NCBI GenBank assembly: GCA_963924565.1
Contig: OZ004607.1
Span: 13,764,001 to 13,828,000, forward strand
DNA from: Ascidiella aspersa
Lineage: Eukaryota
Direction of reading: 5' to 3'
DNA length: 64,000 nucleotides
Each line of letters starts with the position of its first letter. Positions within the stretch are counted from its first letter, which is position 1. The notes under the pieces are model-generated. The model had not been told where the DNA came from and searched no databases. It was given only the letters and a program-made list of their open reading frames with translations. The position numbers and the translations under genes are program-made. Below are positions 17,301 through 19,765 of this stretch, piece after piece.

Positions 17301-19765
17301 TAAGCTGATTAGTTGATTACTTACACATCCATGTGCCTTTATGATGATTGCCATTATGACATCATGGATTAATTGCTATATATCCGCCCTTACAAAAGTT
17401 CAATACAGTGACTTACCCTCCAATTCCTTTGTAATGGACCCCTTCCTGTCTTAACAGAGTGAAATTTTGTGCAATCCTGTCAATAAAAGTGTGTTTAAGA
17501 GCAACACAAACAGAGTAGTGGTTAAATATTAATCCAATGGGATGTAAGCAAAATATACGCTTTGCAGCAATTCTTTACAAACACACACATACACAGCATT
17601 ACATAATGTCATGGTTAAATTTATATATAAAAAAATTGTTTTCCGTATTTGTCAGTGTTAATCCGCGAAAAAAAGTGTAAATATGAAATAAATACCTCAT
17701 CTGCTTTGTAATGCTTGTCAGGAACTGGGTCATAAGCTAGATCAAGATGAATGACTTCTCTTTGTGCAAAATCACATTCATCTATTTCATCTTTAACCTG
17801 TTTAAATATCCCAGACATAAACTGGTTGGCCCAACCATTAATTAATAAGGTGTAGAACTGTAGATAGTAAAAATTCAAAAACTATTTAAAATTCATGCAG
17901 AACTGCACATATTTCTTATATCATTTTTGCACATCTTCAATATTTATAACAAACAGCATAATTTTAGGTGCTGATCCAAAAGTATATATATTTAATGAAA
18001 GACACACACAAACATATGTGTTTAATAACATCTGTGATCTAGCCCCTCGGAAGTTGCTTTATGACCAATGATTACAGCTTCCGTATCAATAGTACACCGA
18101 AAAGCCATCGCAGACTCGCCGAATCTGTCGATCTATGATGCAAGCAGAGCAAGCCAGAAAAACAACTGGCCTGCAGTGAGGTTCGAACTCACGACCTCCG
18201 GTCAAGCCGGGCCGTCGCTCTACCAACTGAGCTATGCAGGCTCAGAGAGGAGCGAGTCGAGAAACAACCATGCGCCAATACTTGCACATTTTGTTAGTAC
18301 AAGTGTGTATTTCATTGATTGATACGGACTGATGATCCCCCAGTGTGAAGTTGCTTGTACTAACAAAATGTGCAAGTATTGGCGCATGGTTGTTTCTCGA
18401 CTCGCTCCTCTCTGAGCCTGCATAGCTCAGTTGGTAAAGCGACGGTCCCGGCTTGACCGGAGGTCGTGAGTTCGAACCTCACTGCAGGCCAGTTGTTTTT
18501 CTGGCTTGCTCTGCTTGCATCATAGATCGACAGATTCGGCGAGTCTGCGATGGCTTTTCGGTGTACTGTATATATTTAACCTTTGCCATGTCGAAATCAT
18601 CATTTGACCCATTGTTGTTTTCATATCTGGTTTCCACATGTACATGCAGTCTTCCGAGCCATGGACACTAAATAAATGCAAAAAAGTTATCTGTAAAAAA
18701 CATTAACTTGAAATTTCTTGTTGTCATATACTACTTGAAAAAAAAACTACTATTTGTCTATTTTGTTATAAATATTAAAATTTAACAAAACTCACCGAAT
18801 ATTCTTTAACCAGCAGTAGAATTTGAAGCAAATATGAAAAAAAGAGAATAACAGTAAAACTTTATAAAACTATTATATAAATATACAAACTCATATATTT
18901 TGTTTTAATAAAAAGTTTTTGCTTGTTATGAGGACTGAGATTATATCTATATTTTGCCACTGCTGATCTAGACTTGAGTTTACCTGTAATGGTGTAAGGG
19001 TAAAAGTTCCACGCTTTTTCGGTCACATAGATGCTGGGGAAAAAGGACTTGGCCCAGTTAGGAAGGCGACTATATCAAATAATAAATTCAGCAAAATGCA
19101 TAAAAACGAATTTTAATCCAAATGACAGAACTGATATTTCTTACTTATTAAGATGTATTCTTTTCTCTGTAAATCTGCCATTTCCGTGATGCTCGTCAAA
19201 GCAAGGCTCATTTGCAATCACCTCAACACCCTCCCCAACCTCACTTTGCTCATTGCTGTGTCGATTTATCATGTATAGCTGACCCCTGCGATACTGCAAA
19301 CATAACAAGAAAAAAATATATAAAGAATAAAAGAAATAACTGAAAATTAATAAAAAAATTAACAAATTTGATAGATTGCCCAAGTACTGAACTTTAAATT
19401 TACACTAGTGTCTTTGGCTCTGCAAAATTCTCAAACGAAATTTTGCTAACACTGTGGATAGTAATTAAATACTAAAGTTTGGTGCACAGATTTCCGGTTT
19501 GGGGCCAAGTCAATTGCCTCAGGTGCTATGGATCAGGAGTAGTTAGCTTTTGCCTTTTTCACTTTCAGATCAATCCTGCTAATTATCCTAGTATATTATA
19601 AAAAACAAATTACGTCATGAATAAGTACTGATAGTTCTAAATATATAAAAACTTGTTGCCAGAAAATTATACATTCCAAAATTGTTGGCACATAAAACAT
19701 GTGAACTGCTTACAAACCTCATTAACTGTTAATGGCATGCATATCCGGTACTCCTTGAGCAACAT
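11377..19765 (-). CDS. PITPNC1: Cytoplasmic phosphatidylinositol transfer protein (PITPNC1/RdgB-beta); exons 19718-19765, 19145-19293, 18984-19069, 18796-18803, 18581-18667, 17696-17797, 17417-17476, 16338-16441, 15073-15128, 11377-11475; terminal exon unresolved (candidate 9130-9239)
   Basis: Spliced translation [46 protein letters not shown]...[21 protein letters not shown]...KTGRGPL...[19 protein letters not shown]...[26 protein letters not shown] matches the class IIB PITP consensus; junctions are GT-AG and in phase. Confidence 0.93.
18168..18241 (-). ncRNA. tRNA-like (Pol III box A/B) module inside the repeat
   Basis: GCCTGCA/TGCAGGC acceptor stem, GCTC/GAGC D-stem, GTGAG-TTCGAAC-CTCAC T-arm, non-canonical anticodon arm. 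Confidence 0.7.
18416..18490 (+). ncRNA. tRNA-like (Pol III box A/B) module inside the repeat
   Basis: GCCTGCATAGCTCAGTTGGTAAAGCGACGGTCCCGGCTTGACCGGAGGTCGTGAGTTCGAACCTCACTGCAGGCC followed by a T5 run; T-arm resembles elongator tRNA-Met; anticodon loop expanded and lacking U33. Confidence 0.7.

Follow-up and report, generated by a model that had tools for sequence, protein, structure and literature searches.

A two-armed insertion of a short non-coding repeat in Ascidiella aspersa, probably made by Penelope-like machinery

Among described systems, the Penelope-like elements (PLEs) are the closest to the repeat considered here. With the purified anole PLE protein (PAc), reverse transcription begins at two adjacent internal sites of the RNA; both strands are cleaved and extended by the protein, and insertion does not require the hammerhead. 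A dimer is predicted, and the presumed template is an mRNA that contains several copies of the element; genomic copies carry an optional tail of 30-40 bp, which corresponds to the stretch from one start site to the other (Frangieh et al. 2024, PMC11167929). In the sections of Craig et al. consulted (PMC8557442), PLEs are described as having an inverted 5'-truncated copy and a tail that is often at one end only, and the hammerhead is assigned to canonical PLE clades and given as absent in Naiad/Chlamys; the cause of the tandem and inverted structures is there called undefined, and their origin is a stated open problem both in those sections and in PMC11167929. Here we describe a 584-bp feature within positions 17985-18579 of a 64,000-nucleotide stretch of the Ascidiella aspersa genome (contig OZ004607.1, positions 13,764,001 to 13,828,000 of the forward strand; hereafter the window), which is probably the product of a single target-primed insertion, by PLE machinery, of a non-autonomous, non-coding retroelement with a 348-bp unit.

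Chlamys elements, e.g. MRC1 of Chlamydomonas, include non-autonomous PLE dependants that make pseudo-long-terminal-repeats (pseudo-LTRs) and multi-copy head-to-tail insertions; elements of the MRC1 type have 3'-end sequence in common with an autonomous family and target microsatellites (PMC8557442, in the sections consulted). Animal non-LTR retrozymes are tandem hammerhead repeats of 170-400 nt, proposed, in the part of the source consulted, to be non-autonomous PLE derivatives and to be mobilised by a rolling-circle route (10.64898/2026.07.22.740005). The present unit is like the MRC1-type dependants, as those sections describe them, in making pseudo-LTRs and multi-copy head-to-tail insertions, and unlike them in bearing a tRNA-like module and in that no common 3' end was found for it. 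It is like the animal non-LTR retrozymes, reportedly the subject of work by Cervera and de la Pena in 2020, in being a small non-coding tandem unit that is inserted as arrays and apparently depends on PLE machinery; unlike them, it has neither a hammerhead nor any Rfam ribozyme at E<=10, and no evidence of circular RNA was seen in RNA run X22, the library type of which may miss small circles.

A single insertion with two arms

Positions 17985-18579 comprise 573 bp of repeat enclosed by two copies of TATATATTTAA (17985-17995 and 18569-18579), read from the sequence as a target-site duplication (TSD). An antisense block (17996-18303) and a sense block (18304-18567) had been proposed to lie between these copies, and alignment to two reference units agrees with this: the unit of the window's own second array (24980-25847) and a 348-bp genomic unit from another locus (L029). 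The latter serves as the reference and is numbered from the base next after GGTGTAC, with TCTTTCAT ending at 97 and the tRNA-like part at 198-272. A longer reading of the TSD is G(TA)nTTTAA at 17982-17995 against 18568-18579, the two differing by one TA and the left copy then being G(TA)4TTTAA from 17982; the G at 18568 is either untemplated or belongs to this longer reading. At the left junction the final AA of the TSD may equally be part of the element, giving 2 nt of microhomology with …CAATGAAAG.

The antisense arm (minus strand) consists of a tail part, unit 98 down to 1 (17996-18093), and a body, unit 348 down to 136 (18094-18303), that includes a tRNA-like module at 18168-18241; its outer end, at 17996, falls in what will be called the unit-97 start window (…GTCTTTCAT). 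The sense arm (18304-18567, plus strand) runs from unit 86 to 348 plus 1 and includes a second tRNA-like module at 18416-18490, its outer end falling in the unit-348 start window (…CGGTGTAC followed by T). Where the arms meet head to head (18303/18304), antisense unit 136 adjoins sense unit 86, with at most 1 nt (G) in common; complementarity from arm to arm is 98% across 128 nt and 95 nt.

When the antisense arm is un-inverted and placed before the sense arm, the two read as unit 136→348→98 and then 86→348, i.e. 1.6 continuous units with a tRNA-like module in each arm, close to the ~1.7 units of the earlier note, which had also correctly placed the end of the antisense block against the start of the sense block. 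The short overlap seen there is of ~12 nt with one mismatch, the antisense outer end being …GTGTGTCTTTCA and the sense inner start TGTGTATTTCA…. The mismatched A at 18309 is private to the window copy (C in 383/392 and 321/329 DNA reads of run X21), as are differences at 18069, 18076 and 18437 and a 1-nt gap at 18211; overall the copy is ~0.9% diverged from the family majority in the same reads.

Since one duplication encloses both arms, the structure results from a single insertion event. Contigs of the runs X2 and X3 stop at 17995/17994, and one X2 contig begins at 18569, as expected at the edge of a repeat. The two-armed insertion in the window is real, and within its unusual family it is ordinary.

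Fixed outer ends, mixed ends and bounded short arms

The genome (308 Mb in 75 contigs) was searched with the whole hairpin as query, giving 209 matches with 40 of 2954 candidates scored; 58 loci were fetched and annotated base by base in unit coordinates, matches shorter than full length being included to reduce the bias of the hairpin query. The count of inverted copies that the earlier note had proposed comes to 23 independent two-armed, head-to-head insertions among the 58 loci, one of them nested in a PLE locus (L064), and at least 18 of the 23 have their own duplication of 10-15 bp around both arms. End-to-end matches to the hairpin query occur in nine places; their inner junctions all differ, whereas they have a constant left end, (A)ATGAAAGACAC, a constant right end, …CGGTGTA(C), and, around each pair of ends, a duplication of 11-15 bp peculiar to that copy. 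The hairpin as a transposing unit, in the manner of a miniature inverted-repeat transposable element (MITE), was rejected, the inner junction being different at every locus; the hairpin is instead an outcome that recurs. The flanks of the nine also differ, except in one pair counted once (L002, C2:22969119-22969680, and L003, C1:40041444-40042005), where an identical two-armed copy has the same flanks and duplication on different contigs; this pair is either a segmental duplication or an assembly duplicate.

The outer ends of these insertions are the regular 3' ends of the family. Of 17 one-armed arrays, 12 have their 3' end at unit ~97 and five at ~348, no other 3' ends being present, and the 5' ends are scattered; the set includes the second insertion of the window (24980-25847, minus strand), recognised from the sequence and tRNA calls as 2.5 direct units of an older subfamily, 5' truncated, with the 3' end GGTGTAC and the duplication TTCCTTAAyAGG. 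The unit-97 outer end occurs in 22 of the 23 two-armed insertions, the targets of which are unrelated, and in 12 of the 17 one-armed ones. Target sites are AT-rich and TSD length is variable, a duplication of at least 10 nt being found by script for 10 of the 16 fetched one-armed arrays. Junctions at both windows slide by a few nucleotides and overlap the duplication by 2-5 nt (e.g. GTACT in L054), which implies that the RNA extended past the start point and hence that initiation was internal. Independent agreement with the fixed ends comes from the X21 DNA reads, in which loose ends, joined to AT-rich flanks of many kinds, accumulate at the two start windows, at 17994/17995 (939 + 301 reads) and at 18090 (unit ~4; 162 reads). 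Folding of the sequence around the start windows gave no defensible shared structure.

A third start window at about unit 240, suggested by matches ending as '1-50', was rejected, the units continuing in the fetched loci L085 and L088; match ends such as '1-50' or '1-33' in the genome DNA search can be cut-offs of the scored stretch and not ends of the repeat. Two odd-ended cases (L086/L089 and L087/L090) have no duplications. In a second sample, made with a one-orientation unit of an older subfamily as query, seen as coordinates only and excluded from the statistics since its odd ends are partly search cut-offs, 13 of 40 clusters are two-armed, and eight of these 13 have ends at unit25 94-100 and 343-345(+5).

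Arrays enclosed by a single duplication span 1.0 to 7.3 units, e.g. L031 (2532 bp with a 13-bp duplication); another locus, L046, has an arm of 12 units, although a duplication was not found there. Because one duplication encloses whole arrays, the multimers were made at or before integration and not by later duplication of DNA. The inference in the earlier note that the template exceeded one unit agrees with these arrays and is supported in substance; for the single copy in the window, rolling-circle copying of a circular RNA, or a second RNA molecule, would fit as well as a linear multimer.

Two-armed copies follow two rules. The first is that one arm ends at ~97 and the other at ~348, as is the case in 21 of the 23 (binomial p = 3e-5 against 0.5), and in all 13 of the copies not found via a full-length match to the hairpin query; correspondingly, a tail is present on one arm only in 21/23. 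A mixed-end copy with ~600 unannotated bp in its middle (L034) was left out of the subset of 13 and of the arm-length test below, and a tail-to-tail arrangement that is probably two events (L033) was also left out. The mixed-end rule follows from a model with one RNA, because the next window upstream of a 348 is a 97, and vice versa.

The second rule is that the shorter arm is bounded. For each two-armed copy the distance was taken from the inner start of the shorter arm to the start window of the longer arm. It lies between -15 and +60 nt in 14 of 21 copies, as compared with 22% for random phase (binomial p = 1.3e-5), and in 7/13 copies not found via a full-length query match (p = 0.012), a range that was set after the data were seen, which counts against the test. 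Short arms of the 348 type measure 202-264 nt in 10 copies (limit 251) and those of the 97 type 86, 97, 99 and 107 nt (limit 97), and the partner arms reach up to 4153 nt. The short arm stops early in three copies, leaving gaps of 133-171 nt. Together the two rules argue for two cDNAs of one insertion having begun at neighbouring sites of one RNA, and the data favour this reading. Newly recognised are the fixed positions of the two start windows, the mixed-end rule, the limit on short-arm length and the parallel to these in the PLEs of the same genome.

Penelope-like families of the genome and the repeat unit

A search of the genome for GIY-YIG domains gave 25 matches, which cluster into two repeated families. 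Family A (loci L061-L072) and family B (L074-L083, e.g. C2:30628752-30640503) are young PLEs with open reading frames (ORFs) encoding RVT_1 with a GIY-YIG domain at the C terminus; such reverse transcriptase plus GIY-YIG ORFs occur as 98-99% identical copies, and on contig C2 family B is repeated head to tail every ~3.4 kb. By eye, a CTGATGA…GAAA core resembling that of a hammerhead can be made out in both families, upstream of the 3' end. Each also has alternative 3' ends, these being in family A …CCTGATTTCTCTAT(TT) or, ~45-48 nt further, …ATACAAAGATT, and in family B …CAAGCTTTTAT or, 83 nt further, …ACATACAAAGC. The two-armed copies combine one short-type with one long-type end in 5/5 cases in family A (L062, L063, L065, L066, L067) and in both of those examined in family B (L077, L078). 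Two seemingly one-armed family-A copies, L064 and L069, have an inverted piece of tail, of 17 nt and ~53 nt respectively, between the duplication and the 5' junction, which is the bounded-short-arm rule again, the inter-site distance being ~48 nt. L081 and L083 are more complex and were left unscored. The repeat matches the published PLE features, and families A and B follow the same rules; the occurrence of these rules in two true PLE families suggests that they are general.

A 571-residue open frame with GIY-YIG and UvrC RNase H domains (E = 5e-49) lies on a small contig (L060, G000:C11:2088-5303). It is a UvrC of bacterial type, and the contig may be contaminant or symbiont DNA.

In its manner of insertion the repeat resembles canonical Penelope/Poseidon-type PLEs in several respects. 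It has variable duplications of 10-15 bp at AT-rich targets, inserts several head-to-tail (pseudo-LTR-like) copies in one event (e.g. L031 and the array at 24980-25847), and has an inverted 5'-truncated copy at the 5' side in the window copy, at 22 further loci and in 13 of the 40 one-orientation clusters; as in PLEs there are two internal start sites, an inter-site tail at one end only and a template exceeding one copy. Unlike PLEs, the unit is 348 bp long, contains no ORF and no hammerhead, and has an internal tRNA look-alike.

The non-coding unit varies between ~345 and 348 bp. ARAGORN and Rfam call the tRNA look-alike in both arms (minus and plus strand at 18168-18241 and 18416-18490, respectively) and three times more in the 24980-25847 array; within it, TAGCTCAGTTGG and GTTCGAACC are what we take to be A-box-like and B-box-like sequences. 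A T5 run (GTTGTTTTTCT) follows within ~10 nt of the module (18491-18503 and 18155-18167; unit 273-286). Such a run is a stop for RNA polymerase III, and would act ahead of both start windows, so that the template was probably transcribed by read-through or by RNA polymerase II. The 3' ends of insertions are …GGTGTAC or …TCTTTCAT, with no A-tail or poly(A). Thus, the element is like tRNA-derived short interspersed elements (SINEs) in its tRNA-related module with A-box-like and B-box-like sequences. It is unlike them in that this part is internal (unit 198-272), not a 5' head, with the T5 run directly after it, that there is no tail resembling that of a long interspersed element (LINE) and no A-rich tail, and that insertions are multi-unit and often two-armed. 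A PLE dependant bearing a tRNA was not found among the matches listed in a full-text literature search, which was not exhaustive.

Early-stopping short arms often end within the module, and 5/7 of the non-tight short arms end at unit 210-275, i.e. within it or at its edge; inner ends in the module (unit 198-275) are found in none of 20 long arms and in one of the 16 fetched one-armed 5' ends, most lying in unit 1-175. This pattern may reflect a block to reverse transcription or a preference in joining. It may be that the conserved tRNA look-alike takes the place of the hammerhead of other PLE dependants.

Mechanism and competing explanations

The proposed insertion by PLE machinery would begin with an endonuclease cutting both strands of an AT-rich target ~11 bp apart. 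The two freed 3' ends would then each prime cDNA on an RNA template of more than one unit, at an internal start window; for one strand this would be unit ~348 (…GGTGTAC) and for the other the next window upstream, unit ~97 (…TCTTTCAT), 251 nt away. The first cDNA would be 264 nt long, reaching 12 nt past the start of the second, the second would extend 310 nt upstream across the unit boundary, and the free cDNA ends would be joined head to head at 18303/18304. By analogy with PLEs, the antisense stretch beyond GGTGTAC (17996-18093) is a tail of the PLE type. It can be inferred that a single RNA molecule served for both cDNAs, perhaps with a dimeric enzyme bound at neighbouring start sites; the template would have been a linear multi-unit transcript, and the enzyme was presumably supplied by a PLE of this genome.

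More tentatively, a PLE-type enzyme pair might grip neighbouring windows on one RNA and hand them to the two DNA ends. If this is so, each two-armed insertion is a ruler of start-site distance, and the 348-bp element, with windows 97 and 251 nt apart and numerous young copies that are nearly identical, is a natural reporter for the building of PLE structures. The family is of value in this regard because its unit is short, its two windows are well separated and it has dozens of young insertions, so that both rules can be read directly from the genome.

Several observations weigh against the proposed insertion by PLE machinery. With respect to sampling, the loci come from a search that scored 40 of ~3000 candidates, the first ten being ranked by likeness to the hairpin query. 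As exceptions to the rules, L005 (C3:467854-468517) ends at unit 97 on both sides, lacks a direct duplication and has 7 nt of its flank (GAAACTA) present again in inverted form, and looks like a palindrome formed at the DNA level, not an insertion product; L018, which has a 12-bp duplication, combines a 97 end with an odd one at unit 208; L084 has both arms near the 348 end; and in 4/21 copies (L035, L044, L057 and, whichever way its arms are assigned, L006) the short arm overlaps the other site by 74-152 nt or more. With respect to PLEs, the tail of the unit is 97 nt and the inter-site distances are 97 and 251 nt, as compared with the published 30-40 bp, and the arms of family-A two-armed copies overlap by hundreds of nucleotides. 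A blastn comparison (word 7, E<=1) of the unit with the 25 GIY-YIG loci, each with 1.5 kb of flank, found no common sequence other than unit copies nested in L064 and L067, and a scan for the motif TTGATACGG likewise gave nothing beyond nested unit copies. Rfam found no ribozyme, including hammerhead, in the unit, either at the gathering threshold on the 64 kb or at E<=10 on 17800-18800 (either strand), the only matches being to tRNA and hairpin artefacts. In RNA run X22 the element is covered on both strands, at a depth that is low for several hundred copies, with no preferred or discrete ends. The 12-nt overlap implies that, where the first cDNA was copied from it, the RNA was already in a duplex with the second, so that strand displacement or a second RNA is needed. 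Finally, no empty-site or one-armed allele is present among the listed joints of X21, X22, X2 and X3, where 131 joints are unlisted and DNA depth at the flanks is ~5.

In a first alternative, each DNA end was primed on a separate RNA at a start window, the continuity in the window copy being coincidental. The 12-nt overlap, the four unit hairpins of 21 with large overlaps and the hundreds of nucleotides common to the arms of family-A hairpins all fit this alternative, as does the finding that in vitro the same start sites are used on both strands, with no coupling stated (PMC11167929). Independent choice, however, predicts about half of the copies to be of same type, whereas only two of 23 lack the 97/348 pairing and only L005 (97/97) is same-type; the pile-up of short-arm lengths just below 251 and 97 nt and the 17-nt and 53-nt inverted tail pieces of family A would also be left unexplained. 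We consider two templates unlikely.

Somewhat less likely again is a circular, unit-length RNA copied by rolling-circle reverse transcription, as in retrozymes, with the multimer arising during cDNA synthesis. Such a route has been proposed for animal retrozymes, in the part of the source consulted (10.64898/2026.07.22.740005), and it is consistent with the identity of units in young arrays, e.g. in L046, where 10/11 units equal the reference and there is no inherited heterogeneity. Young units are identical both within and between arrays, so that a linear multimer and a rolling circle are not separable by within-array variants; a hint of a heterogeneous template comes from L022, where 336C>A is common to two neighbouring units and lacking in the third, contrary to rolling-circle copying. 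Also against the circle, there is no ribozyme to make a unit-length RNA, and the X22 RNA reads are without preferred ends, all listed joints, including those on opposite strands, being explained by the ordinary unit continuity of tandem copies (with the proviso that the library type may miss small circles). Moreover, on a 348-nt circle the second cDNA would reach the first priming site after 97 nt.

Twin priming was the mechanism put forward in the earlier note; of its L1 form the contiguous geometry stands (14/21 copies), not the choice of the second start. In L1 twin priming both nicked strands prime on the RNA, the second site being internal, variable and set by microhomology; the resulting inversions, as Ostertag and Kazazian are said to have described in 2001, have contiguous arms with a short overlap. 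The window copy is like these in that an inverted 5' part is contiguous with a direct 3' part, with a small overlap (12 nt), and a 2-nt AA microhomology is possible at its left junction. Annealing of the second nicked strand by chance microhomology would, however, make the outer end of the inverted arm accidental, whereas this end lies within the same few nucleotides in 22/23 insertions at unrelated targets, in a window that is also a regular 3' end of 12 one-armed arrays; the inverted arm starts in one of two fixed windows (~97 and ~348). Unlike L1 insertions, moreover, the present ones have no poly(A) tail, and the frequency of inversion is high (13/40 one-orientation clusters). An L1-style event is thus very improbable.

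Least credible of all is a change after insertion, whether a second, independent insertion at the same site, an inversion or fold-back duplication of the DNA, or an error of assembly. Although the palindrome-like L005 shows that such events occur in the family, one intact 11-bp duplication surrounds both arms with none inside, and the tail, being on one arm only, cannot derive from the other arm by fold-back. More than 20 loci have this architecture, with junctions that differ, and in two other runs the contigs break at exactly 17995 and 18569.

In annotation of this genome, 'tRNA genes between long inverted repeats' are to be read as insertion by-products, and not as MITEs or microRNA hairpins. 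Two-armed copies would, if transcribed, give a long hairpin RNA. At a loose threshold Rfam matched MIR444, RNA-OUT and mir-1302 at 18258-18399; these are far under the gathering scores and were rejected as artefacts caused by the inverted repeat, which is of 220 bp with a spacer of 50 bp. A hammerhead, suggested by a CTGATGA at 18330, was also rejected, Rfam being negative and the motif not being conserved in the older subfamily.

The flanks of the insertion at 17662-17823 and 18580-18687 are covered by X22 RNA reads from one strand only, at a depth of up to 16, and 14 of these reads have a common loose end at 17695 (0.99 agreement) that resembles a splice junction. A transcribed gene probably contains the insertion or adjoins it.

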